In this document: piece after piece, positions 5,895-29,884 of the stretch
Layout of the letters: every line of letters starts with the position of its first letter
How positions within the stretch are numbered: position 1 is the stretch's first letter
From: Anthoceros angustus
Lineage: Eukaryota > Plantae > Anthocerotophyta
Assembly (NCBI GenBank): GCA_010909165.1
Contig: MU008169.1
Location: 1,364,001 to 1,428,000 of the forward strand
DNA length: 64,000 nt
Reading direction: 5' to 3'
The notes under the pieces: model-generated
The model's database searches: none
The model's input: only the letters and a program-made list of their open reading frames with translations
Told to the model about the DNA's origin: nothing
Position numbers and translations under genes: made by a program

Positions 5895-5903
5895 CCCCCT
5901 CTT
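5895..5903 (-). promoter_or_regulatory. Copia polypurine tract (AAGAGGGGG)
   Basis: Purine run on the minus strand abutting the 3' LTR. Confidence 0.85.
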
Positions 5904-5971
5904 AACCTGACGAGGTTAAAGGCAGTTTAATAAACCCGATTAAACCATAAACCCTTGGCACCCCCTCGTAA

Positions 5972-6475
5972 TTGAACGGGCATGCAAGGCGTAAATGCAA
6001 CGCGAGCGAGCAAACATGCAGCACCTATGTGTCGATCGACGAACCGAGGGCGGACGAAAACCACGAGCTTCGGAGATGGAGCTTCTCGTCCCTCTCGGAC
6101 CATGCTATGTATAGCATTCTAGAGTCTGTTGCAAGCAACAATGGCACGCAAGCGAGCGGAGGCATAGGTTGCCGTAAACACTGTGGAGACATCACGGCAG
6201 AGGCAATTCCCTTGAGCGGGCATGCAAGGCGTAAATGCAACGCGAGCGAGCAAACATGCACCGTGGATCGTCGATCCGCCGAGGGCGATGTACACGAAAA
6301 CCCCGAGAGCACGGAGAGATGGAGCTATGCGTCCCTCTCGTCTGGACCATGCTATGTATAGCATTTACAGCAGGAGTCCTGTTGCAAGCAACAATGGCAC
6401 GCAAGCAGAACGGAGGCATAGGTTGCCAGAAACACCCACGGGTGGAGACATCACAGCAGCAGAGCAATTCCCTTG
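5972..6475 (+). repeat. ~240-bp tandem duplication in the Copia 3' region
   Basis: 'cgggcatgcaaggcgtaaatgcaacgcgagcgagcaaacatgca' at ~5976 and ~6216, with collinear downstream sequence. Confidence 0.85.
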
Positions 6476-8267
6476 AGCCTGGCGAGGCACAAGCAGCGAA
6501 GAAGCCTGCAGAATGGCCTACACAGGCGGACAGAAACTTGATGTGCCATCTTATCCAGACAGTGAAGAAATGTGAGGAAGTCGAGGAAGCGCTCAAAGCC
6601 ACGAAGTGTCGGGTCTTGGAGCTTCAGGACTTGATGGCCAAGGTCCCGCCAAGAGATCCACGCATGTTTCCACTAACGGAGGTTGAAGTGCGGCACCTTG
6701 TAAAGGAGCTGACTATGCTTGGAACACGATAATTTTGCAAGGAGGGGAATATACAAACCCTCTTCTTCTGGGGTCGGACCCTCTTGACCAACACCTACCC
6801 CAAAAATAGCCTTTTACGCCAAAGTTAAAACATCACCCCATTCCCGGGTACATACACTTACACATCAAATGTTTACCGCTTGCCTCCACTAATGACCCAT
6901 CGTAGCCGGCCCGCCTAACAGTCTATCACAACACTCAAGCCTTGTACTATTTTGTGGGGAACTCGGTGGACTATCTATACCACAAAAAATGGATCTTTCA
7001 CCGTCAATCCAATGTTTTGAGTCTATCTACTTTAGAATGGAGGAATATGACGAGGCCATTAGACTCATCCGGCTCGAGCGGATACCGAATCCAACACCAT
7101 TGCTAAATTACGATTCGCTCCACCAACACCATAATTATGGAAGATCCCTTCGTGAAATTGACACTTCCTTAAAAGAGGATTTAAACCCTAGGTCTTCAAA
7201 ATGACATTAGCCTCTTTATTCCATCCACAATCGAAAAGTCGCATTCTTTCCATTGACATGATAGAGAGCCTATCTAGGGCGAGCCCTCCGTGATGTGTTC
7301 ATGGACACCATTCAATAAATTCATATCAAAACTAAACATGGTTATACTTTGGAAAGAAACAAAACCGAAGTTGTGTGTGAACGCCGACATGGCGGCGCCC
7401 ACAACGATCGACAAAACGTAAACTTTAAAACGAGCACATGCAAGCGGTTACGCCGGAATGGTCCTCATGGGGACCAATCAGAACTCATACGGCCTTGAGC
7501 CAACACTGAATGTATGACCACTTCTAAGTTCCACATGCGCTCCACTTCTGGGTCATCAAAACCATTGTTCTTGCCCATGGACTTGGCGTTTTCGTTCTCC
7601 CCAACTCCTGCCTCATCAAGCACTTGCGTAAGCGCGGTACCGTGGTCGAGCCTATGCCGCTTTTGGTTTACGAGGACGCTCACGTCGGGTTTTGGCTTTC
7701 ACGGGTTTGAATCATTGCCTTTATCAAACAAGTAACACATTCCCTCAACCATTTGAATGTATGTTTCAAATTGAATGAGCAAAATATGACATCTTTCACA
7801 TGTCAAATCACAATGTACAGCCTTGGTCGATCGCAAAGATGGTGTCCAGGATCAAGCACATGCCTGAGCTATGACCTCTGCAATACAATGGTCGCCTTCA
7901 ATGAGCTCCATAAACGGAAGAAACTTGAGTGAGCCGTAGCTCTCTTCACCATTTTGATTCTTTTATAATTTGAGACCATTAATATAATATTACAAGTAAT
8001 TTTAAACTCGCAATCAACGATTGAAAGATATTTGCTATGATTTTGGGTTTAAAACTACAAATTCTTAACTATGCTGGCCAAAATAAGGACTTGTGAATGC
8101 GTCCTTAAGGACAGAATCCTTTAATTTAAAGGATGCCCTTAAAAATCAACAAAGTTGGTGTGAATGAGGAGTAGAGGTTTTGACCTCACGGCCTCCTACG
8201 TACTAAACTCTCTATCCAACCACTTGAGTAACTACCCCAAGCCACAAATCATTTGAAGCGCTAATTA

Positions 8268-11200
8268 CACTACTACGAACCAGGTGGGTATGTCACGTTT
8301 TTTTGTAACATATATATGTCCTATTGTTACATTATAATGTCCATTGTAACGGTTCGTCCCGAGCCAATAAATCGTTACAATTAAATTGTTAGAAGGCGAT
8401 TCGTTGTAACGCTTCGGTTCAGGTTGGGCCTCGGGTTGGTGAGCATGGATTAAGTGGGGATTCGTTTGCCCGCTTCGACATGAAGGGGCGGCGCACATTT
8501 ATGTGCCGACGCCACCCCGATGATCTTGAGCGTCATGGATGCCCTTTATGGATGCCCCTTTATGCTCGCCACTTATTTTTCACCCACCGTACACACCACA
8601 GATTTATCGTGAAAACATATTGACGTATTTGAATGTATGGGGATTGTATGTACGACGATGGTGTGTATTGTTCTCGTGTTGGCATACAACATGTAGAATA
8701 AACGCATTAATTCCAGAGCATTTGTAAATCGTTGTATCATGTTTTATGGCCAGCAATGGAGGCCCATGCACCATAAGGCCGCAACCTCCATTTGAAGACG
8801 AAGCATTCCAAACTGTAAGCGCATTCTGGCTGCACTAGCCGTTTGCAGAAGGCGTTGCAAGTGGCGGATCGGTATCCTAGGTGTTTATTTCACAAGTGGA
8901 TGGGGCACCGCATGAAGCAAACATGCCATGACGGCCAGGCAACAAGTGCACACGATTGGCGGCGCTAGGATGTCCGTGTGGAGTTTTGTAGCACTTCCAC
9001 AAAGGGTGTGTGTAGAAGCGAAGTTGTTCAATTGAAGTAAAGATGGAAAGCATTGCCTTCCCAAAGTTCACGGACTAAAGCGTGTTTGTCACTCGAGGTT
9101 GACTCCCATTCTATTTGCACACTTCCTTGCATATGCACTCTGCTTACCTTACACATTTCTATAGCGCCCGGGACCGCATGGATGGCACACAAACAGAGCC
9201 TTACTACTTGCACTGTCTCACCAATTCAGACACCCAACACATGGAGCAGTATCATTGGCAATGGCGAACCCGCCCATAGAGTACCGCGAAGGCACAAGGC
9301 GTGCACGCGGCCGCGATTGTGATGGCGGTGCACATTCGGGTTGAGTCCGACTCGGCGACCAACTCCACCGCCAGAAAAACCAGATGGCACAGATGTGCTG
9401 CCGTCTCCAATTTGGAGTGCAGCCCTCGGGCGGTGGAAGGCGATGAGAAGGTGTGCGTGTGGGCGTACCGATTCGGCGATGTGCACACCCCATATGTGTG
9501 GGGAGGGGGAGAGGGTAGGTGGGTGCTCCAAGTCATGGAGGCAGCAGGGTTGCCGGAAATGCATCATCGGTTTGTCACAGCAAGAGCAAGTTTGGAGGAT
9601 GATGGGCCGTTGCCTGTGCGGCTGGCGCATCGGCGACGGGAAAGTTTGGGGAGCTTGCGCAGAAAGGTTGGGTCTTGGGTTCCTGGGTCGAGCAAAGGAG
9701 CTCGCAATATTCGTGCACCAAGCAGTTGAGGCACTCCGAGAGAATTGGCGTGAACACATCGTCGTCCTCGGTTGAGGCGCAAGGGAGAAATTGTATTGTG
9801 ACGCCATGTTGGGAGAGCACTTGTTCACACTTCTGGTGGTGCAGAAGGTGGCCCAATTTGGAGAAATTACCTCGGCACCCAACAAGGCTGATTGGATTGG
9901 TGGGAACTTGCGGACGTCATTGCAGGAGGAGGCACAGTTTCACAAGTGGATGTGGGGGAAACACATATATGTGCGCGAGAGGGGGCCCTATTGGGATCAA
10001 CGTCGTTACCTTATGTGGACTGGCCCAGATTATGCGTTAAGGTCCATGCTTACAGCCCCATCTACAGCATGTGGCATTGTCACTATTGTGAAGCAGCAAT
10101 TGGACGGGGCGAACTTCTACAGGTATCAGTCGAGGGTTTTGTTCACTCACAACAGGGTGGACCATTTCGCTGCATATGCAGATTTCAAAGTGAATGACGA
10201 AGGCCATTACCAGCTACTGGAGGCGGCAGACATGATCGTTGAGGCCTGCTTCACCTTGGCTGGAGGACGACTTCATGCCTTGTTGGCGGGGCGATCACAT
10301 GGGTACCTATTCCGAATAAGGAGCCTGGCGGTGGGATGGAGGTATATGAAGGCGAGTTCTTCATGCACAAGAGCTCAATGAAGATAGGAGTTTGGCGTGG
10401 GAGGTGAGTGTGCACCGTTGTTGTTCTTGTGCGGCATTTGGTATGGTGCAAACCATGACGGTTTTAAAGCGACGGCTCCAATGTGGTTTGCCTTTGTTTA
10501 CGTTTACCAGCCAAGGATTCCAATCTTCAATCCACCATTGGAAGCACGCGTGGAGTGCGATGTTGTATGCGGCACCCAGGTGTGCCATTAGAGGACTCAA
10601 GCCCACAGCTCGCTTTTGTCTCCATCTTCACACTCACAACAGAATCGAGTCGCTTACAACTTCTAAGAACAAAGAATGTATTCGCGTGACAATCGAATCG
10701 TTGATCTTGTTATCCTCACCATATCGCAACGGACATCCGGCATAGTCGTGACCTTAAGTATATGTGGCCGTCCGTACATTGTCCATCTCGTATGGGTTGG
10801 ATCGTATACATGCCACTTCCGAAAATACGGTTTTAGAAGGAACAACATCACCATGTCACGGTTTTCCACAAGGCACGTCCGGGCCGGGATACCCAAGACA
10901 AGACAAAAGCAGGCCAAGCGTCTCGCGTGTGGAGAATCCGCCCACCCGGGTGCGAGCATGAGTGGAACCCACCAAGTGGATGTGGCGTGAGGTTTCCGGC
11001 ATATTTTAAGGGAAGGTGCATGAAAAAGCGAGCATGACAAGAGGCCAAGCGGACCCGCAGCGTGGGAGGGCGTGGATGAACATAATTACAAGGGAGTTCA
11101 CGGGCCCGATCGACAATGGAACTAGAACTGGGGACCTCATCTCCGGTGTACCAAGTAGTGAAACTATTTTTTACTATAGATAAGTGAGAAAGAGGGGACG

Positions 11201-11379
11201 GTGCGGTTGGAGGGAAGCATGCTGCACCCATTCAAGTAGAGAGAAGGGTAACAGACAATGTAACAAACTTAGGCTTGTGTGACGGAGTCTCCCCCATACC
11301 ATCCGTTGTAACGTTTGTGATCACCATAACAAGAACTACAACAAAAAAACGTTACATAGGCAGCAGGTTTCTAGTAGTG
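8268..11379 (+). mobile_element. CACTA (En/Spm) element, 3.1 kb, non-autonomous
   Basis: Ends CACTACTACGAACCAGGTGGGTATGTCACG and (reverse complement) CACTACTAGAAACCTGCTGCCTATGTAACG, 23/30 identical. 3-bp TSD TTA at 8265-8267 and 11380-11382. Subterminal TGTAAC/GTTACA repeats at both ends. Confidence 0.92.
9053..10990 (+). pseudogene. Decayed reading frame inside the CACTA element, possibly Ulp1/C48-protease-like
   Basis: ORF-track pieces at 9053, 9341, 9791, 10397 and 10676 share one frame, broken by about six in-frame stops. Weak VLFTHNRVDHF...RAQ...GGECAPL pattern. Confidence 0.4.
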
Positions 11380-14300
11380 TTATTTATTTTATCAAAGGCA
11401 GCCCATGGGGAGGGTGTGCATGGGAGGGCGCCGGCCGGCGCCATGGGAGGGCGTGCATGGGAGGGCCCCGGCCGGCCGCCCATGGGAAGGGCATGCATGG
11501 GGCGCCGGCCGGCGCGCCATGGGCGTGCATGAGGAGGCGTGGCCGGCGCCATGGAGAGGGCATGCATGGGAAGGGCCGGCCGCCAAGATCCTCTTTATGG
11601 ATGCGATTTTGAAATTCTTCTCTCATGCCACGATTGCACCCATTTTCGAAAAAACCTATGAACTTACTTTCATTAATTCAGACTGTACAATGTGCAACTT
11701 CGCTCAAGAATATATGGGCATATCTGTGTACCCGCCAAAATGTGGAACATAACATTACTTTGAGGTTTGGGGCCCTAGTTTTGAGGGGAACTAATCCCAC
11801 TTACTCTATATATTTTAAAAATATTTTAAAGCAACAGCTCCTGATTTGGTTGACTTGTATGGTATTGAAATAGTGTGCATGAAGTACAAGGCCTTTGTGT
11901 TCCCCACTGAGGGCGGTCAGTTACTTTGAAGGACTTCGCGCTGCCCCACCCTGGACTGATGTAGTGGAATGCAAATGGAAACATGACCTTGTGACAAGGG
12001 CTTGCGGCATTTGGTTGCTGGTGACAACCATGTGGGCGACTGTAAAAAAATTAGAATGAAGGTGCTTGCTAAAGAGGGTTCCATTTGCATATCAATCTGG
12101 AATCCGATGTCGTCGTATACTCTATCACATACGCGAAGGACATTGTCTGTGTGTGGGAAGTGAGAACGACGACCAGGAACTTTGACCTAAACCCCAAACT
12201 CTCGGTGGAGTGAAAGGGCGCCGGCCGGCCGGCGCCCTTTCCCTGCACACTCGTATATGCCCAAAGTGTAGTATACAAACGACTACTCGGGTCTTTTGGT
12301 GTTTTTACATAGTGCCTTAGTTGAAAGGCAATATTTATGTGCGTAACACCGCCAAGAATGGTCAACCACGTGGGTTCAATTATGCCGAAATCGATGTGTT
12401 GTGGAAAGCCTAAACCCTTCACATGCCTCGGCTCATGAAAACAATGCAACCAATGGTGTGACACCATGATTTTGTGATAAATTTTTAGAGCATGCCATGA
12501 CTAGTTTTAGACCCATCGAAACCCTCTTCAAGGATAAAGCCAAGAAACCCCATCATATATTCCCCTTGCAAAATTATCGTGTTTTGGATATGTGGGTATT
12601 GTCGGTGACACCCCGGAGTTGGCAAGACCTACAATCCTTTCCCCACCGAAAGAAGTAAGTCACACATGATATCTTCTATGTTGTTGTGTTTTTCGTACCC
12701 CACGATTGTATGTGCGAGTTGCTTCATCCAATCGAGCATCCTCTGTTTATGTGCTCGACAGGGATAGATAGACGTGTAGCCAGCATACCGCTTCTCACAA
12801 GACAAAGACATCCCATCGTGTGCTACTTTGTGTAGGCATAGTAAACACCCTTAGGCCCATGGAGGAAGCATCTGCACCCATTCAAGTAGAGAGAAGGGTA
12901 ATGCATACAATGTAACAAACTTAGGCTTGTGTGACGAGTCTCCCCATACCATCCGTTGTAACGTTTGTGATCACCATAACAAGAACTACAACAAAAACGC
13001 TACATAGGCAGCAGGTTTCTAGTAGTGTTATTTATTTTATCAAAGGCAGCCCATGGGAGGGTGTGATGGGGAGGCGCCGGCCGGCGCGCCCTTGGGAGGC
13101 GTGCATGGGAGGGCCCCGGCCGGCCGCCCATGGGAAGGGCATGCATGGGGCGCCGGCCGGCGCGCCATGGGCGTGCATGAGGAGGCGTGGCCGGCGCCAT
13201 GGAGAGGGCATGCATGGGAAGGGCCGGCCGCCAAGATCCTCTTTATGGATGCGTATTTTGAAATTCTTCTCTCATGCCACGATTGCACCCATTTTCGAAA
13301 AAACCTATGAACTTACTTTCATTAATTCGTACTGTACAATGTGCAACTTCGTTCTCGAAGAATATATGGGCATATTCAGGTACCCGCCAAAATGTGGAAC
13401 ATAACATTACTTTGAGGTTTGGGGCCCTAGTTTTGAGGGGAACTAATCCCACTTACTCTATATATTTTAAAAATATTTTAAAGCAACAGCTCCTGATTTG
13501 GTTGACTTGTATGGTATTGAAATAGTGTGCATGAAGTACAAGGCCTTTGTGTTTGCGGTCATTACTTTGAAGGACTTCACACGCCCCACCCGGATCGATG
13601 TAGTGGAATGCAAATGGAAACATGACCTTGTGACAAGGGCTTATGCATTTGGTTCTGGTGACAACCATGGGCGTGTAAAAAATTAGAATGAAGGTGCTTG
13701 CTAAAGAGGGTTCCATTTTTGCATATCAACTGAATGTCGTCAGATACTCTATCACATACGCCAAGGACATTGTCCGTGTGTGGGAAGTGAGAACGACGAC
13801 CGTGAACTTTGACCTAAACCCCAAACTCTCGGTGAGGCTGAAGTGGCGCGCCCTTTCCCTATACTAAATGCCCAAAGTGTATACAACGACTACTCGGGTC
13901 TTCTTTGGTGTTTTTACATAGTGCCTTAGTTGAAAGGCAATATTTATGTTACCGCCAAGAATGGTCAACCACGTGGGTTCAATTATGCCGAAATCGATGT
14001 GTTGTGGAAAGCCTAAACCCTTCACATGCCTCGGCTCATGAAAACAATGCAACCAATGGTGTGACACCATGATTTTGTGATAAATTTTTAGAGCATGCCA
14101 TGACAGGCTAGTTTTAGACCCATCAGAAACCCTCTTCGAAGGATAAAAGCCAGTAAACCCCCATCGGGTATATTCCCCCCTTGCAAAATTATCGTGTTTT
14201 GGATATGTGGGTATTGTCGGTGACACCCCTGGAGTTGGCAGCACCTACAATCCTTTCCCGCCTGAAAGAAGTAAGTCACACCTGTGATATCTTCTATGTT

Positions 14301-14490
14301 GTTGTGTTTTTGCTGAGGGCAGCCCACGATTGTATGTGCAGGTTGCTTCATCCACTGAGCTGTCCTCTTGTTTATGTGCTCGACAGGATAGATAGACGTG
14401 TAGCCAGCCAAGTACAGCTGCTTCCTGTCAGCACAGCACATCCTACTGTGTGCTACTTTGTGTAGGCATAGTAAACACCCTTAGGCCCAT
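11213..14490 (+). repeat. Direct tandem duplication, unit ~1.62-1.65 kb, spanning the CACTA end, the TIR-element end and the Copia pol 3' end
   Basis: CACTA terminus at 11379 and 13027; TIR end at 12583 and 14198; junction microhomology TGGAGG near 12865. Confidence 0.9.
11400..11585. repeat. GC-rich modular block (CATGGGAGGG and GGCCGGCGCC units) of the AAC-TIR element; duplicate at ~13050-13230, related block at ~26545-26765
   Basis: Repeated G-tracts alternating with short palindromes; same position relative to the 'caactttgttgatttt' landmark in both element copies. Confidence 0.8.
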
Positions 14491-17400
14491 GGAGGCAAGA
14501 TGCTTGTAGTGCTTGACTTTAGCAAGCCCCTTAGTCAACAGGTCTGCTGTATTTTCATCCGTGTTTACATACTCCACCTTGGCCACACCTCTCTCTGCCA
14601 CATCCCTTATGCAGTGGTGATAGAGCTCTATGTGCTTCGTCCTTGCGTGGAATCTTGGATTAGCCACTAGGGCTATAGCAGACATATTATCGTAGAACAG
14701 GCGAGTTGCAGAGGTCTGTGTCATGAAAATAGACTCTAGGAACTGTCTCTCCCACTCAAGCTCCTTGCAAGCATCTGTTAGAGCCTTGTATTCACCTCGA
14801 GACGATGCTGCTAAGACCGCTTACATGACCAATTGATCGCACGAGGCTAGCAAGCATACTAGAGAAAGTATTGTGCCTGCGGGTGTTAGAATCATGCCCG
14901 TCGATCGCCAGGGCGGTCGACAAGCTCTTCTTGCCACTGATAGATAGTGAAGGCCTAAGTTGATGGTTCTCTTTAGATAGCGATAGATCCTTTTAACCGC
15001 AGCCCAATGGGCTCGACCAGGTGTCTTGAGAAATTGAGCTACCAAACTAACAGAGAAGCTGATATCTGGTCTAGTCCAGTTTGCCAGAAAAATGAGGCAT
15101 CCAACTGCCTCAGCATAAGGGACAACAGCCATATCCTTTTCCTCCTCTGTAGACTGGGGAGACATTTCAACTGTAAGCTTCTCACCCACAACTGAAGGTG
15201 TAGTAACGGGGCGAGCTTCATCCAGGTGAAACCGTTTTAATATTTCCTTGAGATACTTTGTTTGGTGAAGGACAATTGTGCCACTCTGCCTGTCTCTACG
15301 TATTTGGATACCCAAGCAGAATTGAAGAGCACCCTGGTCCGTCATCTCAAACTCGCTTCTCAAAAGATCCGTAACTTTGTCCATCTGTGACATGCTATTG
15401 CTCAAGAGAATCGCATCGTCAACGTACAAGGCCAGAATGACGAAGAGCCCAGACTCAGATAAGTAAAACACATTCGAGTCAGCTGCTGATTGTGAGAAGC
15501 CTGCCTTACGCAAAAATTTCATGATACGTTTGTACCAGGCTCTGGGGCTTTGTTTCAAACCGTAGATAGTCTTCAAGAGTTTGCAAACTTTACGAGGCCA
15601 CTTCTTATTAACAAACCCTTCTGGTTGGATCATGTAGAGAACCTCCTCTAGTTCTCCATGTAAGAAAGCCATGCACACATCCATCTGATGGAGCTCGAGA
15701 TCAAACTCAGCAGCAAGTGCGAGCAAGATTCTGACAGATGGAGGCTTCACAACAGGTGAAAAAGTGTCTCCATAATCTATACCAGGAATCTATGAGAATC
15801 CTCTCGCCACCAGCCTGCTTTTGTATCTTGCAATAGTCCCATCTGATTTCAGTTTAGTCTTAAATACCCACTTACACGTAATGGGTTTCCTGCCAGGTGG
15901 CAAATCTGCTAGCTCCCAAGTATGATTTTTAAGAAGACTGTTGTACTCGTCATCGATAGACATACGCCAATGAGCCCCATCAGGACCATTCGGTGCTTCA
16001 TCGAACGTACGAGGATCAGGCCTGACACCTGGTACATGTAAATCTGTTACATTAGCCGCAGCATGTCTCCTGAAGTCTTCAGATTGATAAGGAGGCTCCA
16101 GCCAGGACTCACGTGGCCTTCTCACTCTTGCAGGATAGCGAGAAGGAGGATCTGCAACAGCAGGTTATCATGATCTGAGAACACAGCATCACTGTTGGCT
16201 TCACTGTTGTCCGAGTCTTCGAAAGCACCAGGTTGCTCATCATCATCTGAAAAATGACCAGCAAGGTGAGGACCTATGTCCCCCTCATAAACAGCAGCAT
16301 CTACAGGATCTACAGGAAGTGCACCAGCAACAGGTGGACCAGGCTGTGCATCCTGTGGCTGTAAATAAAAAGGCATCAACTGCTGCATGGTCTAACAAGG
16401 TAGGAGTATCACCATCTGACTGTGGATATTCATGTGTGAACTCAGTAGAGCCAGGCATAAACTCTAAACCAGTAGTGGGAGCAGAAGCATTTGTGTTCTC
16501 AAGGAGAGAGTTAGGCAACATGTCAGACTGAGGAGTCAACAGTTCCTTAAAGGTAACACTACGTGCTAGTGTGATTTTTGAGGTCTGAGGGTCATACAGT
16601 TTATAGGCTTTGGATCCCTCTGAGTAGCCAACAAAAATAGAGGGCCTAGACCTATCATCTAATTTCCCCCTCTTGGCTTCAGGAACAAAGGCAAAAGCAG
16701 GTGACCCGAAGACCCGCAAGTGCAGCAGACTAGGCTTTCGGCCCCAAAACGCTTCATAAGGAGTGCGACCAGGCAGAGCAGAGGTAACTATTCGATTCCG
16801 AATGTATGTGGCTGTCACCACAGCCTCTGCCCAGAAAGTTTTTGGTAAGGAAGCCCATGAGATCATGCTACGGGTCATGCACATTAAAGTTTGATTTTTG
16901 CGTTCAGCAACGCCGTTTTGTTGTTGTGTATATGGCACTGACAGCTGACGTATAATGCCATGTTGCTAGAAGAGGTCATCAAATCGATGGCCAGTGAATT
17001 CCCCTCCGTTATCGCTTCGAAAACACCTTACAAGCCGTCCAGTTTGTCGCTGAACAATGGGGATCCAAGCAGAGAGGTGATCAAACACATCACTCTTCAA
17101 CTTGATAGGAAAAGTCCAGGTATAGCGGGAGAAATCGTCCGTCAGGGACAAATAGTACTCAGCACCGCCTAAGGACTTCACTGGCAGCTTCCCAGCAATG
17201 TCAGCATGCACTAGCTCAAGAACAGCAGTGGCCCTGGTAGGTTGCTTGTTCTTGAACGGCAGCTCTTTCTGTTTAGACAAGATACATGACGTGCAGGCTG
17301 CAAGATTCTTTAAACAGCTAGGGAGCTGTTCTCTATAAAAGGTGGAGTTAGACATAAGATCCAACTTTGACTTGTTCACATGGCCCAACCTAGCATGCCA

Positions 17401-18935
17401 AAGGTTAGCCTTCACATTGTAAGCAGCAAGCAGAGCTCTAGTACGCAACTTAGACACTGTGACCAGCTGATACAGATCATGTACTAAGACAGCCTTGGCA
17501 ATAGGCCTCTCTGGACATGTGAGTAGATACAAGTAGCATTTACTATCTTCAAAGCGAAAACCATACAGGTTACTCTGAGAAATGGCTCTAATGGACAACA
17601 AATTTTTACTCATGGCTGGGACATACAGAACATCTTGAAGATGCAAGGTTGACCCGTCAAGAAGAGGTATGTCAACTACACCTGTCCCTTTTACCTCAAT
17701 GCCTCGCGAATCACCCACAAAAACTGACTGAGGAGTCTGCTGGTTGTGGAAGGAGGAGAACATCTGTCGGTTGTTGCAGACGTGGGCAGTAGCTCCCGAA
17801 TCAATGAACCAATGCTGAGTATTCTCCGTGGTCGAGGTCAAGCAAACTGTAAGTACAGAACTGCTGCTATGAGGTTGTTGCTGTCCATTCTGTGATTTTG
17901 TTTCCTTGGATGAAACATGAGCCTCTGATCTTGTATCCTTTTTGGGCTCTCCAGCCTTCTTCTTTCTACAATCACGCTCCCAGTGCCCAGGGATTTGGCA
18001 CCAGTTGGAATTGCCTGTGCGCTTAGTGGTGGAGGAAGAGGTACCAGAAAAGTTTGAAGCAGTCTTCTTACTTTTATCCTTCCCTTTCCATTGATTCTTG
18101 CCTTTGGCAGCAAATAAAACTTTCTCACCACGCAGCCGTGAACCAGAATGAGAGCGCTGACGGCTCTGCTCCTCTTGCAGGAGTGCCCCAACTATCTCAT
18201 TCAGATTTAATGTAGAAGGTTGACCACTTGCTGCTGCTGAGAAAGCATCACGCAAGGTGGCATTTTGGCTGGATATGAATGATTGGTAGGATAAAGGCAG
18301 GCTGGTCAAAAGCTGTGCTGTCATCTCCACTTCAGTTATCTTGGTACCTAACGCGGCAAGCTGTGCCCGTAGGTGCCTCAACTTGGTGACATGAGCACCA
18401 ACTGGTTCCCCCTCCTTCAACCTCAAACTGTGAAAATCATTACGTGCGTTGATCATAGTACAAACGTTCTTGACCTGATACGTGCCATGCAGTTGTTTCC
18501 ATACAGATTCTGCTGACTCAAGAGAGTCAACCTCAGTAACTGTGGTCTCGTCCAAGCTTGACAAAAGGATGGCGAATGCAACCTTGTTGCACTTCTTCCA
18601 TTTTGCCTTGTCATCAACAGAGGGCTGAGTTGCAGCGTAGCTGGTACAAGAAATGGATTGGCAATGGTGCCATCCACATACTCGAGAACATCACGAGCAT
18701 CCAGGTTAGCTCTCATGCGTGCTTTCCAGCTTTCAAAACGAAGTGCTTTTCCATCAAACCTATCTTTCTCTTTGAACTCACCATAGTATGATGATCCTAC
18801 AGATATGGACTGTGGCCCTTGACCTGTAGACATGTTTACACAAATGATTGGTGGTGGAAGTGGTGGGTTTGAGAATAGCCAGGAGAGTGGATCAATATCA
18901 CTATCGGAGTCAAAATCTGAATCAAATAGTGACAT
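14443..18935 (-). pseudogene. Copia gag-pol polyprotein, frameshifted into about six pieces
   Basis: Gag FDGKALRFESWKARMRANL; zinc-knuckle-like WCQIPGHWERDC; protease WFIDSGATAHVC; LWHARLGH; integrase HADIAG / TDDFSRYTW / RSDNGGEF / QQNGVAERKN; RT CKWVFKTK, YGLKQSPRAWY, LYVDD; RNase H DNMSAIAL..NPRFHARTKHIE. Confidence 0.96.
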
Positions 18936-19253
18936 GCTCTATTGAATGCACAAAAGCCAGACAGACGCCATATGAGACATGAATCGGTAAGTTATAAAAC
19001 CTAAATGCCCTTTATTTACATGAATAACGTTTCAAAACCCTAGAGGTGTCACATGACAACTAACTAGTAACCGTTCATGCCAGCATAAAGAGTTTTTCAG
19101 AATGCAAGGGACGTGACCTAAGCAACACATAGGCAGACAGCAAGGACATCTGCAACACCTGAACACTCCAACCAACAGACACAAACTTCAGATGCGCCTG
19201 TTGAGAGCTCTCAAGCCAGCGTGCTGGAGATTCGCAAACTGTCCCGCACCCCT

Positions 19254-19847
19254 TCAGATCTGAGGGGTCATAGATGGCTGATCCTCAGCGCTAGCTCCCT
19301 CTCTGATGAGAACCAGGGATTCCAGATACAGCGCTGCAAATGGCTGAACTGCAGAGGCAGGGGCAGGTGATTGTTGAACTCTGAATTGAGCAAACTGGTT
19401 CACAAGTTCTGCAACTTCTGATTGCAGGGACTTCACACTTCTGACAACTTCACCAAGTCTTGGAATTTTGAAGGAAAACGTGCGAACAACAAGTGCTTCA
19501 ATACTTTCCAACTTGAGGATGAATCTTTCAAGAGCGAATGGACGCTCTGTAAGATCAATCTGATTGATTAAGTTTTCGTCCTCTTCAATCTGCAGTGCCC
19601 TAAGTGCTTCTTCTTCTCGTGCTCCAGCAGGGTTTCTCCTATCACGCTCAAGATGTCGGGCAGCGATCGGGAAAATGTAAGGGGCAGGAGCACCTGATAG
19701 CACTCTTTCCCTCTCCCTCTGTTCTCTGTCACGAGTCCAAGCGTCGATAATAAGATTGTTGTGACGTCTTGTCAGGTAATCAACCCTGAAGGCCAAGTCA
19801 AATCTGGAGGGAGTTCGATTCTGTCGTCGCCCTCCTCTTCCTGGCAT
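19254..19847 (-). CDS. Extra sense ORF (197 aa from first ATG) between PBS and gag; function unknown
   Basis: Uninterrupted ORF MPGRGGRRQNRTPSRFDL... inside the LTR pair, ending ~320 bp before the gag ORF; basic N-terminus and a heptad-like segment VVRSVKSLQSEVAELVNQF. Confidence 0.6.
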   Translation of the reverse strand: MPGRGGRRQNRTPSRFDLAFRVDYLTRRHNNLIIDAWTRDREQRERERVLSGAPAPYIFPIAARHLERDRRNPAGAREEEALRALQIEEDENLINQIDLTERPFALERFILKLESIEALVVRTFSFKIPRLGEVVRSVKSLQSEVAELVNQFAQFRVQQSPAPASAVQPFAALYLESLVLIREGASAEDQPSMTPQI

Positions 19848-20093
19848 CTTCAGCACAAGAGCTGCACTTTGACACTAGCATTCAATTTTGCACTAGTAGT
19901 AGCCAGCCAAATTGCAGACTATTGACATATGTTATGCAGGTCAGTAAATTAGAGGCTTCAGCGTAGAACTCCATTCACCCAGGGTGGATGGTGTGCTATG
20001 CTGAACTCACTAAATTACTAGCCGTGCATTTTCTAGCATAAAGGTAGACTAGATGTCAATGACTTTGGCAGCGGAAGGCACACAGCATCGAAT

Positions 20094-20105
20094 GCTCTGA
20101 TACCA
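20094..20105 (-). promoter_or_regulatory. Primer-binding site for initiator tRNA-Met (TGGTATCAGAGC)
   Basis: Canonical plant Copia PBS directly abutting the 5' LTR. Confidence 0.95.
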
Positions 20106-20288
20106 TGTTATTTATGCAATTGTTCTGGACTCACTTGGGCAAGGAATACAAGAAGCAATGCAACAAAAGAACTTGAATAATAAAATGTGTACAAAATTGT
20201 ATCTTATATACTGTTGAGTTCATTAAATCTTAAAGGTGTATATATAACCGAGTTAGATTAACCCATGGTTATCTAAATAACCTCAACA
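20106..20288 (-). repeat. Copia 5' LTR (183 bp)
   Basis: Matches 5712-5894 at 179/183 positions by hand count. Confidence 0.97.
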
Positions 20289-20770
20289 ACAGCCGGAGTA
20301 GTGGTAGCCAGAGTAGTCCCAACTAGAGCAGTCCCAAGCAGATGACTCACAGCCGGAGTAGTGGCCGCAGAGTTGTTCGAGCCAGAGTAGTGACAACCGG
20401 AGGGGTCACATCTGGAGGTGTCACAACCGGTGGAGTCAGAGGCGTCAAAGTCTGCAGCCCGATCCAGTAGGAGTCACTCCGAGTAGTCACTCCGAGTAGT
20501 CACTCGGGTAATCCACCGGAGTAGTCACTGGAGTAGTCACAATGAGTAGTCATCAAGTAGTCACGATCCGGAAGTCAAAGTTGAAGTCACAATCGGAGTA
20601 ATCACCACTATTGGAATCAGAGCAAGAGTCCCAGCTGGAGACATAGCTAGAGTCACTGCCAGAGGCCGGGCTCCAGCCGGAATGGAAGCCTAAGGACAAC
20701 CCATAGTATAAGGCGGAGTAGAAGTGCACAGACTGGACGAGCCTCGGGTAACACTCAGAGTCTGCTTCAT
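20289..20770. repeat. Modular 15-bp GAGTAGTCAC array, the Copia insertion target (continues at ~5685-5711)
   Basis: Same unit family as 1-585. The left flank of the Copia, 'gtcccaacc...gactcacaac', resembles the units on the right flank. Confidence 0.8.
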
Positions 20771-20864
20771 ACTCATATCCGCTATTGGAACTTGAATCAC
20801 ACTCATTATAATAGTTGCAATCAATTCCTATTGTTTCTCCAACGATTTCCACATTCTATGCCAC

Positions 20865-20866
<2 letters not shown>

Positions 20867-20945
<79 letters not shown>
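20867..20945. repeat. (TA)n microsatellite, ~39 units
   Basis: Direct reading. Confidence 0.98.
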
Positions 20946-20948
<3 letters not shown>

Positions 20949-21659
20949 TTTCCTTATAGAGCATGGTAGTTTTCCTTGAGTAAAATCATGTGCAACGTGT
21001 AGCTCATCTTGCTTTTTTATTTAAGTATAAAAAATAGAAAATAAAACTAGAGATGAAGTATGTTTTAAATGAAGTAGTTCTCAAACTTGTCTCTCCTAAA
21101 AGTAATCTTCAATCTTGCTATACACAGTTAAGTAAAAACAATGATAGAAAAATGGTGAAGTGGTTTGGTTGGCTGGAAAGGTGAGAGTATTAGGTCCATG
21201 TTACCATTCATATAACAGGCACAATTATATAGGTGAAGGTAAGATAAACAAACAGGTGTGGAGACATGGGTGCATTGAAGAAGGCAGGGTGGAATATAAA
21301 TAAATAGCTATCCAAAAGAGAATGATAACTGTGGGGGGAGAGAGAGAGAGCTCCTTATTACAGTCATGTTGCAAGAGCAAGAGGGGAAGAATATAAAATT
21401 GATGTGATAGGAGAGCTCCTTGTCAAAGTCATGTTGCAAGAGAAGGAGGGAAAGAATATAAAATGGGTGTGATAGGGGAGCAATAACTAGTAGGGTGAGG
21501 TAAAAGGAGAGAGACCAAGCATTGTGTTAAGATAGTAGGAGAAGGTGGAGAAGAAAATGGTCAACTTAACACCAAGCCTCCAAAGTGTGTTGCAATTTGG
21601 AAGTGTTACATAAAATTGTACCAACGACTGAAACATAAGCAGGCTTTTCTAGCAGGGAA

Positions 21660-21740
21660 CATACCGACACACACCGACGAATACTAGAAAACACCAACAC
21701 AAACCGACGGATACTAGAACACACCGACAGATTTGAACAC
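21660..21740. repeat. ACCGAC-containing short repeats resembling DNA-transposon subterminal repeats
   Basis: accgacac / accgacga / accgacgg / accgacag cluster; no intact CACTA terminus beside it. Confidence 0.45.
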
Positions 21741-23229
21741 ATTATCCTTCAATTCTCAACACTTAACCTATGCCACCAGACCACCACACCCTGCACGTAC
21801 CTTCTAGTTTTACTACATCTTAATGCTTCAAATGGTGCGCATTATTGGAAAATTCTTGCATCCTCCCATTCCTTTCAGCCTTGTTGCCATAGCTGCCATT
21901 GGCTTCTAATACGAACATGTGCATCTTGCCGCATCAATGCTACTGTTTTCAGGGTTTTTTTCACAGCTTACTAGACTTAATCAAGGACTCAGAATACCAC
22001 TCGGAAGACAGAGTACTACTTAGACGACAGAGGACCACTGTAAATGCTAGTCTAGCAAGATGGGAACACCAATTCTCTAGAATTGTTGGTGAATGACAAA
22101 CACCCGTCTACCAAGCACTGGCCACTCCAGCGTCTGCAAGTTGTTGTGATTGACCATTTGCATTCTCTCTCCACAAAGCTCCCAGCTCCCATGGCTGTTT
22201 TGAAGATTTTCTTGGGATGCACTCGCCCAATATTTGATTGCTTTGCTGTCTCTTCCAAAGTCCACAGGTATGCACCAAACATCCTGGCATGAAGATCTCC
22301 CAGCATCAAGGCATCCAAGCATCTAGCTAGCTGTACCAACCACGCCTATGTCGTTGCCCACAGCCTCTTCGACGGTCGAGACTCTAACTCCACAGGCTCC
22401 TGTGATCTCAAGACCACTGTCTTTTGCCTCGACCCTCTTAATGGCGGCTCTTGCTCTTGCTTTCTCCCGCCTGTCCACCTTTTGTGCACTGGCATTCGAG
22501 CCATTGTCCTCCACACCCACTCCCTTCACTCCTGGCCCCATAGGCTGCAAAATCACCATGGTGAAAGTTATTGTCGCCAAAGCATCCGCATTCAATCCCC
22601 CACTACCGGCATTACCACCCTACTCACACTTTTCGACACAGATCACGTGATTCGCCTTATGGGTGGCAATGCACTCACTGGTCCCGCTTCCACACCATCT
22701 CCGCTGTCTCCGGCATCACATGAGGGTAACGCCCCTCTCTCTGCCACCTTCCCTCCCCCTTCTCCCTCGCCACAAGTTCTTGTTTGCTCCTTCCTGTCTT
22801 GCCGCTTGCCTTCCACAATCCTTCCCTTCTCCTTCTTACCTGCAAGCATGCACACACATCACTTAGCCTAGACAAGGTTCATGTCCCCACGACGCACCTA
22901 CCTTGCGCACACATAACCCTTCCACCAACCATCCTCGATCACTTTACCTCTCCAATAGGCCGGCATGCTCTCCAATCCATGTCTTGCACCCCACTTCAAC
23001 TCCTCCACAGTTGCTCTCCTCCACACCGTTGGACATACTGTTTCTCAAACTCTTTTGCTCCCATGGGACCAAGGGATTGGTCCTATATATGCTCGTGCTT
23101 GGCAAGTCGTGTCGACGTTGCGGCTGCTTGCTAAGGGGTTGGCCACACACCACCATGCTTTTGCACAGTCAATAGAACATGCTCCACAACCCGTTTCCAT
23201 GCCTTCGTGCTCACGTTTGGAGGATGCAG

Positions 23230-26200
23230 CCATTTTGCATCCTTCCTCTTCTCCCTCCAGATCATTGCAGCTTGACACACTTTCTTCCCCACATTGTGGT
23301 TTCTTGTCCGTGATGCCTCTACAAACATTGCCACAATATCCTCGCGATCTATACCTGGGAACTCATACTCTACCTTTCTCACTAGTCTCTCCCTCAAACT
23401 CTCTTCGTGTCAGGACCATGGCACCATCAGCTTCATCTTAGCGCACACTATCTCCAACACGCGATGCTGGAAGGCCTTCCTCAACCGTCCTTCTTCATCG
23501 GTCAACTATTCCTCCTCTTCTTCATTCTCCACCCAACCTCCATCGCAAAGCCGACTCACAGCCGTGTACACTCCCCCCATCGCCGCACCTGCTCACGGAG
23601 TGTGATCACATGATAGCTTCTTGCCAACTGTTTCATCAGTTCTCCTATCTCCGCTGGTGTCAATGTAATCGGTATGTCCTCCTTGTCGCAGGAGGTAAGC
23701 ACTTGAATTCATACAAGCACTTCCTCGACAAACAACCAAGCAAAACAAATCTAATACGCAGATATATAGGTGCAAACCAATAACAAGGAGGGAGTAGCTG
23801 CATGTCGTGGCACAAACATACACTCCCCACGAGAACAATACGCAAATTCCTCATACATCGCCTCTCGGTCATAGCTTTGGCCTCCTCACAACACCCTTGC
23901 ATTGCATATAGAGGACAAGCTATGATCCGAGCTTGTCCTCAATGGAAGGGTCTATATATACTAACCCTTGGCATCGGCATATTCTAAGATATCCTATTGG
24001 CATCGATATGCCGAAAATATCCTAAGAATACGCTATAATATACGAGGAATATGCTAAAGCATATTACTTAGCTTATCCACTTAGCTATTGTATCCTAAGA
24101 ATACACTATACTATGCAAGGAATATGCCAAAGCATATTACTTGAGCTTATCCACTTAGCTATTGCTAACCATATTTAATTAACACTAATCAATGCTTAAT
24201 TAACATAAGCACCTTAGATTAATTAACACTAATTACTTACTTGAAGATAAGTAATTAGATTAATTAATGCTAATCAAACACTAAACCCAAGTGCAGAGAT
24301 TAAACATGATAATTTTTGAAGGGGGTGAATAATCTCGAAGGGGGTTTTCCGCAAATAATCTTTGAAGGGGGTTTTTGATGGGCCCTAAAACAGCGTTTTG
24401 AAGGCATTGCGAAAAACATTCAAAAAAGGGTGTCACCAAGAAGTTACTACTTTCCATCCAAAGAATGTTTGTGTCGAATGGTGGTCACAAACTCGAACCT
24501 ACGGAATAATGCAAAGTAGGAGCGGTGAGGTGAGGAAGGCGTTCTGGAAGGGACTATACTCGCTTTGGGAGGAAAATGTGGATTGTTATGACACCACAAA
24601 GCCACAGACGGTATTTCCTAACACAAAGAACATCGCAACGGACTTACAACATTAACTCGGGACCGGAAAAACGAGATTTTAGTTTCACTCATCCCCGAGT
24701 TCAATCCTTCGTCATCACTTGGTCCGACTTCTCCTCCATTGTCATCATTATCTTGGGCACTTTGACTCGCAGTTGTATTAAGCCACGCCACTCGAGCTTA
24801 TCCCTATCGCTTTTGCATCCTTCCTCTTCTCCCCGGATCATCACTTGACACACTTTCTTCCCCACATTGTGGTTTCTTGTCCGTGATGATGCTCTACAAC
24901 ATTGCCACAATATCCTCGCGATCTATACCGAACTCATACTCTACCTTTCTCACTAGTCTCTCCCTCAAACTCTCTTCGTGTCAGGACCATGGCACCATCA
25001 GCTTCATCTTAGCGCACACTATCTCCAACACGCGATGCTGGAAGGCCTTCCTCAACCGTCCTTCTTCATCGGTCAACTATTCCTCCTCTTCTTCATTCTC
25101 CACCCAACCTCCATCGCAAAGCCGACTCACAGCCGTGTACACTCCCCATGCAAATGCATACACGGAGTGACGCCTGATGGCTTACGCCAACTGTCACCGC
25201 CTCCTATCTCCGCACAATGTAATCGGTATGTCCTCCTTGTCGCGAGGAGGTAAGCACTTAATTCATACAAGCACTTCCTCGACAAACAACCAAGCAAAAC
25301 AAATCTAATACGCAGATATATAGGTGCAAACCAATAACAAGGAGGGAGTAGCTGCATGTCGTGGCACAAACATACACTCCCCACGAGAACAACATGCAAA
25401 TTCCTCATACATCGCCTTGAGTCATAGCTTTGGCCTCCTCACAACACCTCAGATTGCATATAGAGGACAAGCTATGATCCGAGCTTGTCCTCAATGGAAG
25501 GGTCTATATATACTAACCCTTGGCATCGGCATATTCTAAGATATCCTATCGCATCGATATGCCGAAAATATCCTAAGAATACGCTATAATATGCAAGGAA
25601 TATGCTAAAGCATATTACTTGAGCTTATCCACTTAGCTATTGTATCCTAAGAATACACTATACTATGCAAGGAATATGCCAAAGCATATTACTTGAGCTT
25701 ATCCACTTAGCTATTGTAACCATATTTAATTAACACTAATCAATGCTTAATTAAGCATTTTAGCATTAACACTAATTACTTACTTGAAGATAAGTAATTA
25801 GATTAATTAATGCTAATCAAACACTAAACCCAAGTGCAGAGATTAAACATGATAATTTTTGAAGGGTGAATAATCTCAAGGGGTTTTCATAAATAATCTT
25901 TGAAGGGGTTTTGATGGGCCCTAAAGCTTTTGAAGGCATTGCGAAAAACATTCAAAAAAGGGTGTCACCCAAGAAAGTTACTACTTTCCATCCAAAGAAT
26001 GTTTGTGTCGAATGGTGGTCACAAACTCGAACCTACGGAATAATGCAAAGTAGGAGCGAGGAAGGCCGCTCACGGAAGGGACTAAACTCGCTTTGGGAGG
26101 AAAATGTGGATTGTTATGACACCACAAAGCCACGACATGTATTTCCTAACACAAAGAACATCAAGAACTTACTTACAACATTAACTCGGGACCCCGGGAA

Positions 26201-26345
26201 AAACGAGATTTTAGTTTCACTCATCCCCGAGTTCAATCCTTCGTCATCACTTGGTCCATTTTCCTCCATTGTCATCATTATCTTATGCACTTTGACTCGC
26301 AGTTGTATTAAGCCACGCAACTCGCAGAGCTTATCCCTTATCGCT
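23230..26345 (+). repeat. Direct tandem duplication, unit ~1.54-1.58 kb
   Basis: 'ttttgcatccttcctcttctccc' at 23233 and 24813; TIR start at 24303 and 25846. Confidence 0.9.
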
Positions 26346-27594
26346 TTTTCCACCGCATGACATGTTTAGGAGGAGTACCTCTACACTCGACCGACCAAAT
26401 GCTGGCTCGATTTTAGACGGCATTTGCTTCTAAGGTTAGCCTTCATTCCAAGGTTGCTTCTAAGGTTAGCCCTCTTGAATTTTCGATGGAAGTGCCCGCG
26501 TCAGAAGTGCGTGGAAGGAAGGCCACAATGGGCATGCGGAGGGAGGCGCGGCCGGCGCCCTCCCTATCCGCACCACCCGTCGAGGTCTGGTGGTGCGCGT
26601 GGAGGGATGGCGCCGGCCGGCCCGCCCCGCACTGCACCACCAGTATGCCGATGGGTGGAGGCGCGAGCGGAGGCGCGGCGGCGGCGCCCTCCACGCACCA
26701 CCCATCGTAGGCCCACCACGGGTGGTGCGTGGAGGGAGGCGCCGGCCGGCCGCGCCCCTCGCGGCGCCTTTGTTTGGTGGACCAATAAGTTTGTAATTTG
26801 GGATTGTTGGTTTAGTGTTTGGGAAAAAGGTTTAGTAAAGAATAGGTTTTGGGTTCAAACCCCATATCTTTTCAATAACTCAACTTTGTTGATTTTAAGG
26901 ATGCTTGCATGGGCGCATGGGCAATTAACTTTGTTCATTTTAAGGACGCTAGCATTGCCTTAAAGCCCAAGTGGCTGCATTGAGTGCCAGAAGGTTGAAG
27001 ACTACTTGGCGACCTTTGGATGAGTCGGCCAAACCCTAGATCTTTGTGTGGCGGTCCACACCGGATGGTGGGCCGGGGAATGATACTATTGAAGGCGAGC
27101 AAGCAATGGAGGAAACGATAACTTTGAGGCGGACGATATGGACCGCATCCGAATATGGCGGTGGTTCTTGACTCGGTGTCGATGCAAGGCATGGATGAGT
27201 CGCGGAGCACTCTTCAATGACTATTGTCGATCGATGACCACTCCCTCCTTTAGCGGATGTTTGTTGCAATGTTCTTCTGACGATTAAAATGAGACTCCCT
27301 CTAGTACAGGATTGTTTTCATTGTGTTCCACCACTTCAAAGTAAAAGTTTTTTGGTTGTAATAAACATATAAAAATGGCAGCCCTCTAAACATTCTACAA
27401 AAGCGCGGGCCCCACCCTCATGCTCCAGTTCTAGGGTGTTCACTTGAAGTCGTCTTTTATCAGTATGACCTCGGAAAGGGTGTGTGCATTATCAAAGTAG
27501 GGCACATATCTTTATTCTAGGTAAGGTGTTCTTCGTGACAAGGGGTCTTTGTGATGAAGGGGAATGTATATCCCCCTTCAAAAATTATCGTGTT
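25846..27594 (+). mobile_element. AAC-TIR family copy 2 (1749 bp; left end duplicated at 24303); TSD ATTA
   Basis: Left TIR aacatgataatttttgaaggggg at 24303 (the 25846 duplicate has a shorter G run); right TIR cccccttcaaaaattatcgtgtt ending 27594, 22/23 identical to the 24303 copy. ATTA at 25842-25845, 24299-24302 and 27595-27598. Internal landmarks are collinear with copy 1. Confidence 0.85.
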
Positions 27595-29884
27595 ATTAGT
27601 ATCACACGGCATGACATCCTTCACCTCTTCATCGGCCATTTCCTCATCCACCTCCTCGCTCGCGCTTTCACCGTCCTCGCTACTTCTGGTGTCCACATCC
27701 TTTCCGTTCCCCTTAGCATCATATCCAGGCGTTTTGTGGCCTCCCTCCTCTTGCTTTGCTCCACGGAGCACTGCTATCCCAAGGCAATAGTTTTTGCCAC
27801 GGATAGCGACTTCCTTGTTGGGTTTGCCCTCGATAGCAAACCTAAGCTCTTGCACAAGAGCACGATTGACTCCCTCCCGCCAGCCACATGGTGGGCCTCA
27901 TCGATAGCACCACCATGCTGCTCCCTATGGCCACATTGGTCCCCCTCCTCCGGACACCCGCCAAAGTGGTCCTCTTTTCCAGTTGGCATGACCCTCGCAG
28001 ATTCCTCGTTTGCGATAGCCTGGTCGTCCCCTGCAGCTAATAGCTCCAGCGTTAGCTACACACCTCTTGTAGAAAACCGCTCCCCATGTAGAGCGGTGGC
28101 ACTAAAAAATGGAGGCACTTTAAAGAACTTTTGAAGTCGATGCTGAGTTCATCAAAGGGCGGATGAGATCATAAAGAATACCCATTGTCCTTGGAGGCCA
28201 TTACTACATGGATACTCATCTATCGAACACAGTCGAAGTCAAAGTCAGAGTCAAAGTTAGTCATAGCGAGAGTCTCAGCTGAGAGTCTCAGCTAAAGACA
28301 TAGCTAGAGTCACTGCCATAAGTCGAGCCCAGCCGAAATAGAAGGCCCAGGAGAAATTATAATATAAAGCGGAGTAGAAGGCCATTATTATCACTTTGTC
28401 AACCAGGCTTTTCTTAAGTGTGAGAACAATATTATTTCATACTTGGCAAAGTGTGTTCCACTAATGTAGATGCAACAATGTTCTGATCAAGCCCTTTCCC
28501 CTTTGTATAGGATAAACAAACTCTCATCTAAGAATCTAGTATTCTATTATATGAATCTATTATAGAATCTATTATTCTATGATATATAACTACTCTCAAT
28601 TAAGAATATTTAATAATCTTTAACTAAATTCTTTTAGTTAAAGATTACTAAGTTGGGAAGTATAGAAAGATATATAATACAATACATTATAATAGACATA
28701 TAATAGAATAGTACATTCTATTCTATTATAAAATTGGATCGAAGACTCTAGAATCTCTTTCTAAACATGGTATTTGAAACATTTGAGTTCCATGTTTAAT
28801 TATTTATTTAAATTTATTTAAACATAAAACTTTAACAAAAAATCAATCTAATTTAGTTGAATATGATATACTTACCATGAAGGATAGAGATACTTAACAA
28901 TGATGTTCCTATATAAGATGCTTAAAAACAACGCTCCTATACAGCACAAAATGTTCTCCATCCAAGCACGTGAATGGAGTCCTAGAGGGAACGGATGCCC
29001 TGGTGCTAGTAGCTGAGGCACACCATAGTCCGTCCAAGTTGTCCAAAAAAGTACCAGGTCCATGACGGAAATTCGTCCACACTGGACTTCAATAAAATTC
29101 TTGAATTCTTCCTAGCCTAGATTCCTTACAGGGTAGATAATGTAATTGAACCTGGTAAGTACATACGTGTAAGCGAGATGGAGACCCAGTTGTCGGTGTA
29201 TTGTGCAGGCACGTGTGCGGTAATGCTGAGCAAGGGTTAAGGGGGCGCGCTTCCGAGATACGTGATTGGCCCATTCCGGAAATCTGAGAGGAGCTTTGCT
29301 GACGACCGACACGTATGTATTTCAGGGCCTTCAAAATGGGCCGCTCGTCATGCCTTCCTTCACCCAACATTTGGAATTGGCACATTGAATTGCCTGCGAA
29401 AATTCAGCGCTATTGCACTGCAATCCTTGCTTCCGCACAATTTCACGGTATGCAAGTGGAGTTGAGATGTCCAAAGAGCGCTGAACGTTCTCATATACCA
29501 CCGTAGAATTTGGAATGTAGGATGTCTCGGTGGCAGCCTGCGGACCAAGGCTGGATGCCCATATTTCTGACGATCCTGTCCTTCCCGCTCCGTTACACGC
29601 TGACAGGCACGGGTTTGCTGTAGGCGTGATTGCAGTGAGCAATGCGGGTAGGAGCGCAGCCAGTGCCTGGTCTGTCCAGCTCTGAATTTGGCAGCTCCTG
29701 ACTCACATCGGGACGGGGCAGGAACTCCCTTTTCATCACTGTATGTGGGTGCCTACAGCCTTACAGCATGTTCTTTGGCGCCGGCTTTGTCCTTGAATTT
29801 CGTAACTAATGACGAAGCTGCTGAAACTTGTGCTTGGGCCCTTCCTCAGTTCCTTGCATCCGCTTGTCCCATCCCGCAGCTGTT

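Follow-up and report, generated by a model that had tools for sequence, protein, structure and literature searches.

Architecture of the locus

The window, that is, the whole 64-kb stretch of DNA that was analysed, contains a diverged and non-autonomous TIR family at two loci, inserted independently and referred to here as copy 1 and copy 2. The features are as follows.

5712–20288, minus strand: complete Copia retrotransposon, the host of copy 1, recognised by its LTRs, PBS, gag, integrase and RT domains
6719–6722: TSD TTGG to the left of copy 1, from direct reading; only k = 4 matches
6723–8267, minus strand: end-B part of copy 1, with the TIR starting at 6723 and the ‘landmark’ at ~8137–8248; no recognisable coding
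8268–11379: nested non-autonomous CACTA element of 3.1 kb, an inverted repeat with TIRs CACTACTACGAACC / CACTACTAGAAACC
11383–12583, minus strand: end-A part of copy 1, with subterminal G-rich repeats and the TIR ending at 12583
12584–12587: TSD TTGG flanking copy 1 on the right, where its true junction lies, from repeat family D10 and the k test
12860–14495: second unit of the copy 1 tandem duplication, comprising end A (terminus 14198), TTGG (14199–14202) and ~280 bp of Copia flank
23233–24814: first unit of the copy 2 tandem duplication, comprising ~1070 bp of flank, ATTA (24299–24302) and an orphan end A (24303–24814)
25842–25845: TSD ATTA to the left of copy 2, from direct reading and the k test
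25846–27594, plus strand: copy 2, 1749 bp, with TIR, GAAGGGG repeats, GC palindrome block (~26500–26770), ‘landmark’ (~26790–26900) and TIR; no recognisable coding
27595–27598: TSD ATTA to the right of copy 2, from direct reading and the k test

The Copia element hosting copy 1 is bounded by 183-bp LTRs (5712–5894 and 20106–20288) with 4 mismatches between them and TG..CA ends; a tRNA-Met-type PBS adjoins the 5′ LTR, and the best relative in the protein database, from Logan run SRR33208241, is 47% identical. Its pol ends near 14450, the insertion site follows ~250 bp downstream, and copy 1 was inserted into the 3′ non-coding region of this minus-strand element. An earlier note on this DNA had held that removal of copy 1 restores an open reading frame. 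When the flanks were joined in silico, solely for the reading frames across the empty site, the plus-strand (antisense) frame gained just 26–27 codons, and the host site is non-coding Copia sequence; the claim is not borne out.

The extent given earlier for copy 1 (6723–14198) likewise needs revision. The end at 14198 stems from a tandem duplication of 1.65 kb, in which 11208–12865 is repeated at 12860–14495 with 90% identity and with its junction at an imperfect microhomology of ~12 bp. Since the duplicated unit takes in the TTGG and 280 bp of flank along with the terminus, the true end of copy 1 is at 12583 and its span is 6723–12583. The element proper comes to ~2.75 kb because the 3.1-kb CACTA element resides inside it, and its end A comprises a 37-bp GC-rich palindromic tandem array (11403–11582) and a further palindrome at 12205–12248. 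The nested element carries both CACTA hallmarks, CACTA/CACTG termini and a 3-bp TSD (TTA at 8265–8267 and 11380–11382), and its ORFs have no match in Pfam, a word search or Atlas. A 196-aa ORF at 9791–10378, equally devoid of Pfam, word-search and Atlas matches, falls within this nested CACTA and is therefore irrelevant to the AAC...GTT family.

At copy 2, a tandem duplication upstream (23233–24814 repeated at 24811–26348) has produced an extra, orphan left end at 24303. The GAAGGGG motif clusters at the termini of this copy, which account for 6 of its 22 matches in the window.

Termini and target duplications

By direct reading, all of the ends, at 6723, 12583/14198, 25846 and 27594, start with AACAYGATAATTTT. 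The terminal 14-mer occurs six times exactly in the window, and allowing up to 2 mismatches yields seven matches against 1.07 expected. The TIR of copy 1 extends over 31 bp with 1 mismatch when measured to the duplicated end (14198), and over 20 exact bases followed by a small indel when measured to 12583; that of copy 2 extends over ~23 bp, again with 1 mismatch. A further candidate TIR pair at 20576/32080 lacks any extension and was set aside as chance.

Both copies are flanked by exact 4-bp direct repeats, TTGG/TTGG for copy 1 and ATTA/ATTA for copy 2. Duplication lengths of k = 2–11 bp, with boundary shifts of ±2, were compared at both copies, and k = 4, with no shift from the TIR boundary, is the only length that matches in both; at that boundary, no flank match was found in either copy for k = 2, 3 or 5–11, and the probability that 4-bp flanks would agree by accident at two loci is ~(1/256)^2. 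The re-reading of the ends and flanks thus upholds the core of the earlier note, a TIR family with sequence-variable 4-bp TSDs, and the TSDs of 3, 8 or 9 bp that it had set against its own reading do not fit at the TIR boundary of either copy.

The same comparison separates the family from several superfamilies. No flank match of the kind made by hAT (8 bp), Mutator (7–12 bp), PIF-Harbinger (3 bp) or Tc1-mariner (TA) elements is present at the TIR boundary. Unlike CACTA elements, the AAC family lacks both CACTA ends and a 3-bp TSD, and trimming its ends to CAC... (a shift of −2) leaves no flank duplication at any length. piggyBac and Kolobok share the 4-bp length, but their TSD is TTAA, and the TTGG and ATTA found here do not match it.

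Shared layout and coding capacity

The two copies have a common, collinear order: end A, GC palindrome block, ‘landmark’, end B. Between them, end A (~125 bp) is 70% identical and the 110-bp ‘landmark’ 68% identical, with homology at end B covering ~45 bp. The internal order proposed earlier therefore holds for the TIR, the GC block, the ‘landmark’ and the collinear ends, but not for the ORF relic that had been placed in it, which is not conserved between the copies: tblastx of copy 1 against copy 2 detects no common peptide outside the TIR and GC block, and Pfam finds nothing. The region preceding the ‘landmark’ has a tRNA-like look; ARAGORN and Rfam at the gathering threshold found nothing there, the best tRNA score being 12.8 bits (E = 7) in copy 2, with none in copy 1, and the resemblance was rejected.

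The Pfam scan covered every ORF of at least 150 aa, plus a number of shorter ones within or near the two copies. It returned no match within either copy; the domains it did detect, all lying outside the elements, were those of Copia and Gypsy, and no transposase was found in the 64-kb window. Neither copy encodes anything recognisable, and both are therefore non-autonomous, as the earlier note had it. A metagenome scan for public copies, using a 20-nt TIR pattern, gave 80 single matches, all of which we attribute to chance, as none extends past ~25–38 nt.

Superfamily assignment

The AAC...GTT elements most likely belong to the described Sola group, which would make the find uncommon but ordinary. 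Sola elements, which are present in moss, encode a DDD transposase and create 4-bp TSDs; their termini vary greatly in sequence, and their TIRs measure 11–1124 bp (PMC10741241). Sola2 likewise has 4-bp TSDs (PMC3627910), and a survey of 1007 plant genomes recovered seven TIR superfamilies, Sola among them (PMC12973397). The superfamily comprises Sola1, Sola2 and Sola3 (Bao et al. 2009, as relayed in PMC10741241) and includes a Sola1 of Physcomitrella. Our family resembles this group in its variable-sequence 4-bp TSDs (TTGG/TTGG and ATTA/ATTA), in its TIRs of ~31 bp (copy 1) and ~23 bp (copy 2), which lie inside the 11–1124-bp range (PMC10741241), in its non-flowering land plant host and in its cut-and-paste anatomy, non-autonomous derivatives included. 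Copies 1 and 2 differ in lacking a transposase, and the likeness is drawn from published Sola descriptions. The Repbase rule for non-autonomous elements calls for a TSD of equal length and termini alignable over positions 1–11 with a classified member (PMC4455052), and the Sola literature searched gives TSD length only, without terminal signatures. The earlier reading thus stands insofar as the family fits none of hAT, CACTA, PIF, Mutator or Tc1/mariner; its further suggestion, that the family fits no group cleanly and may be undescribed, gives way to the agreement with Sola in TSD length, variable termini, TIR range and presence in moss (PMC10741241).

An undescribed 4-bp-TSD lineage, either a new superfamily or a deep branch beside Sola1–3, seems to us unlikely. 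In its favour, no terminal signature in the published descriptions consulted could be paired with the AAC...GTT termini; yet unusual ends carry little weight where Sola termini are themselves very variable (PMC10741241), for which reason the AAC ends are no argument against Sola, and the family agrees with that group in the lengths of its TSDs and TIRs and in its host. Were the transposase to fall outside Sola1–3, the family would represent a cut-and-paste lineage of land plants, with 4-bp TSDs, that has not been described before.

It is quite improbable that the copies are non-autonomous members of Ginger, Academ or Chapaev-type CMC. Academ TSDs measure 3–4 bp. Ginger is present in plants and its TSD range of 4–6 bp covers the 4 bp observed, but it has 5′-TG...CA-3′ termini and TIRs of 40–270 bp (PMC10741241), as against AAC...GTT termini and TIRs of 23–31 bp here, which speaks against Ginger on both counts.

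That these are not mobile elements, their inverted repeats and flank matches being chance or by-products of tandem duplication, can hardly be credited: a tandem duplication does run across one terminus at both loci, and a generic scan for TIRs with 4-bp flanks gives 0–6 chance candidates in shuffled windows, but two unrelated loci have the same 14–20-bp terminus at either end and are homologous, in collinear order, beyond it, the 31-bp TIR far exceeds the 14-bp chance candidates, and duplications, which copy an already formed junction, cannot make the opposite inverted end.

Proposed mechanism and implications

The explanation that we lean toward overall is an old, immobile, non-autonomous cut-and-paste family mobilised in trans, with Sola as the likely partner. 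Copies 1 and 2 would be old, immobile, gene-less elements bounded by imperfect 23–31-bp TIRs starting AACAYGATAATTTT, and the GAAGGGG-like, G-rich subterminal repeats behind the TIRs would probably serve as transposase-binding sites. A transposase supplied in trans may have made a 4-bp staggered cut, with no evident target consensus across the two insertions, and gap repair of this cut would have left the duplications TTGG and ATTA. The likeliest such enzyme would be a Sola-superfamily transposase of the DDD type.

Land plants rarely carry Sola-type elements, which are missing from standard plant TE pipelines. These pipelines expect only hAT, CACTA, PIF, Mutator and Tc1/mariner, so that a non-autonomous family whose dispersed copies have 4-bp TSDs would be overlooked or misclassified in the annotation of this genome. 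The defined ends provide a handle for the search for the autonomous partner and for the question of which subgroup of Sola has persisted in early-diverging land plants. In other respects the find is an ordinary one of dead, nested and gene-less elements.

Later events at the locus

Copy 1 inserted into the Copia 3′ region, and the CACTA element later inserted into copy 1. Microhomology-mediated tandem duplications arose later at both loci. The Copia LTRs, with 2.2% divergence, look younger than the internal duplication, with 7.2%; spread of the composite by retrotransposition, if every copy of this Copia family carries the insertion, would account for the difference. A third, similar tandem duplication lies at 440–3353, without an AAC end. 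A tie between the tandem duplications and the chemistry of the elements was considered and rejected, given the 440–3353 case and the position of the junctions, which fall at microhomologies away from the termini.

Termini and extent of the two insertions

The two insertions of the AAC element, a TIR transposon family with AAC...GTT ends, are real, and the earlier description of them is largely right, although the extent of copy 1, its "restored" ORF and the "ORF relic" of both copies require correction. By direct reading, the terminus of copy 1 from 6723 begins AACACGATAATTTT, and its reverse complement finishes at 14198, followed by TTGG; copy 2 starts with AACATGATAATTTT at 25846, directly after ATTA, and ends at 27594, again followed by ATTA.

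6719-6722, TTGG, the TSD left of copy 1 (direct reading)

The terminal 14-mer occurs exactly six times in the window and, with up to two mismatches, gives seven matches there versus 1.07 expected from shuffles. When duplications of 2-11 bp were tried, with the boundary moved by up to 2 bp either way, copy 1 and copy 2 alike matched at one length alone, 4 bp, and solely at the exact TIR boundary. The claim of two independent insertions, each with paired inverted ends and a 4-bp TSD that varies in sequence (TTGG and ATTA), thus stands.

Self-comparison of the window located, in its first 28 kb, three segments of about 1.5 kb that are each tandemly duplicated:

440-1922 / 1926-3353, unit 1.49 kb, without an AAC end
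11208-12865 / 12860-14495, unit 1.65 kb, 90% identity, within the Copia LTR retrotransposon around copy 1
23233-24814 / 24811-26348, unit 1.58 kb, 92% identity

Two of the three span an AAC-element terminus and its flank. Because the duplication at 11208-14495 takes in the copy 1 terminus with its TTGG and some 280 bp of flanking sequence, the insertion junction already falls at 12583/12584 and was duplicated to give the end at 14198; copy 1, which the earlier note had extended to 14198, occupies 6723-12583. The duplication at 23233-26348 repeats about 1070 bp of flank together with 510 bp from the start of copy 2, producing an orphan end at 24303 with ATTA directly before it. Paired units differ chiefly by substitutions (4-7% divergence across the three), with transitions exceeding transversions, and short imperfect microhomologies are present at all three junctions. 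The duplications look like real, old and generic events, not assembly noise; we saw no sign that they are products of the AAC element's own chemistry, the one at 440-3353 containing no such end.

Shared and nested structure

Sensitive blastn and an alignment of six ends assign opposite strands to the copies, minus to copy 1 and plus to copy 2, and reveal homologous blocks that follow one another collinearly:

End A, one terminus, about 125 bp, 70% identity between copies
GC-rich block with palindromes of the GGCGCCGGCCGGCGCC type
"Landmark", an internal segment, 110 bp, 68% identity
End B, the opposite terminus, about 45 bp, homologous between copies

In copy 1 the GC-rich block consists of 4.9 tandem units of 37 bp (11403-11582), and in copy 2 it has inverted arms; GAAGGGG is clustered at the termini of copy 2 and degenerate in copy 1. 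Outside the homologous blocks, the interiors are unrelated. Directly before the landmark, both copies carry a T-arm-like motif (GGTTCAAACCCC within 8150-8260, GAGGTCAAAACCTC within 26790-26885), for which tRNA models gave no support (best 12.8 bits, E = 7).

One inverted repeat inside copy 1 marks the two ends of a CACTA element nested there, with TIRs CACTACTACGAACC / CACTACTAGAAACC and the TSD TTA on either flank:

8268-11379, nested non-autonomous CACTA, 3.1 kb

The AAC element proper in copy 1 therefore comprises 6723-8267 and 11383-12583, about 2.75 kb, and every longer ORF ascribed to copy 1 falls within the CACTA. The latter also bears GTAACG-type subterminal repeats and a protein-like 196-aa ORF (9791-10378, plus strand) with no relative by Pfam, word search or Atlas. 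Since tblastx finds no peptide common to copies 1 and 2 and the ORFs of neither match Pfam, the proposed ORF relic is unsupported, and both copies are, as had been suggested, non-autonomous.

Superfamily placement

In their anatomy the copies correspond to non-autonomous cut-and-paste transposons, moved in trans by an enzyme that cuts its target with a 4-bp stagger. In TSD length, TIR type and host group the AAC elements resemble Sola, one of seven TIR superfamilies across plant genomes (PMC12973397), which combines 4-bp TSDs and DDD transposases with 11-1124-bp TIRs and "very variable terminal sequences", and is present in moss and rare in flowering plants (PMC10741241); Sola2 likewise has 4-bp TSDs (PMC3627910). 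Because published Sola termini vary so much (PMC10741241), the AAC ends, once read as setting the family apart, are no argument against Sola. On these three likenesses, rather than on transposase relationship, we consider a Sola-type family the probable assignment, and a new lineage unlikely. A metagenome scan with the TIR returned chance matches only. Ginger requires TG...CA ends and 40-270-bp TIRs (PMC10741241), and the AAC elements have neither. The flank-duplication tests rule out hAT, Mutator, PIF, Tc1/mariner and CACTA. PiggyBac and Kolobok duplicate TTAA and are excluded by the TSDs observed here.

The Copia host of copy 1

5712-20288, minus strand, complete Copia enclosing copy 1

Its 183-bp LTRs have TG..CA ends and four mismatches; the 5′ LTR has the primer-binding site TGGTATCAGAG next to it, a purine tract adjoins the 3′ LTR, and gag, integrase and RT domains were found. 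The best relative in the protein database is 47% identical. The pol frame stops near 14450, past the conserved RNase H C-terminus, and copy 1 therefore lies in the 3′ non-coding region. The plus-strand ORF reportedly restored by removing the element is antisense to the Copia, and removal adds only 26-27 codons, a gain allowed by about 0.3 of random sequences. The timing is odd: the LTRs differ by 2.2%, versus 7.2% (substitutions) for the tandem duplication within the same Copia. Retrotransposition of the entire composite (Copia, AAC element, CACTA and duplication) as one unit, later than these events, would account for the difference, as would homogenisation of the LTRs.

Other features of the window

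39579-41615, plus strand, probable host gene; one exon closes with the start of a RING finger CSACNQLLHRPVVLNCGH, and a ZZ-type zinc finger FHCEDCPKNIGYDLCGNCH is encoded further on, in another exon
44121-51105 and 54558-60360, a Gypsy-type element in two copies that have diverged (74-84% identity), with RT_RNaseH_2, Integrase_H2C2 and rve domains

The RING-finger start and ZZ-type zinc finger liken the gene to a PRT1-like E3 ligase. The half of the window with the Gypsy-type copies has a strong positive GC skew. Inverted homology (78-92%) links 890-4089, left of the Copia, with 28086-28891, on the right side of copy 2. The pair could represent one repeat present twice in opposite orientations, or else long arms belonging to a larger element that takes in everything between them.
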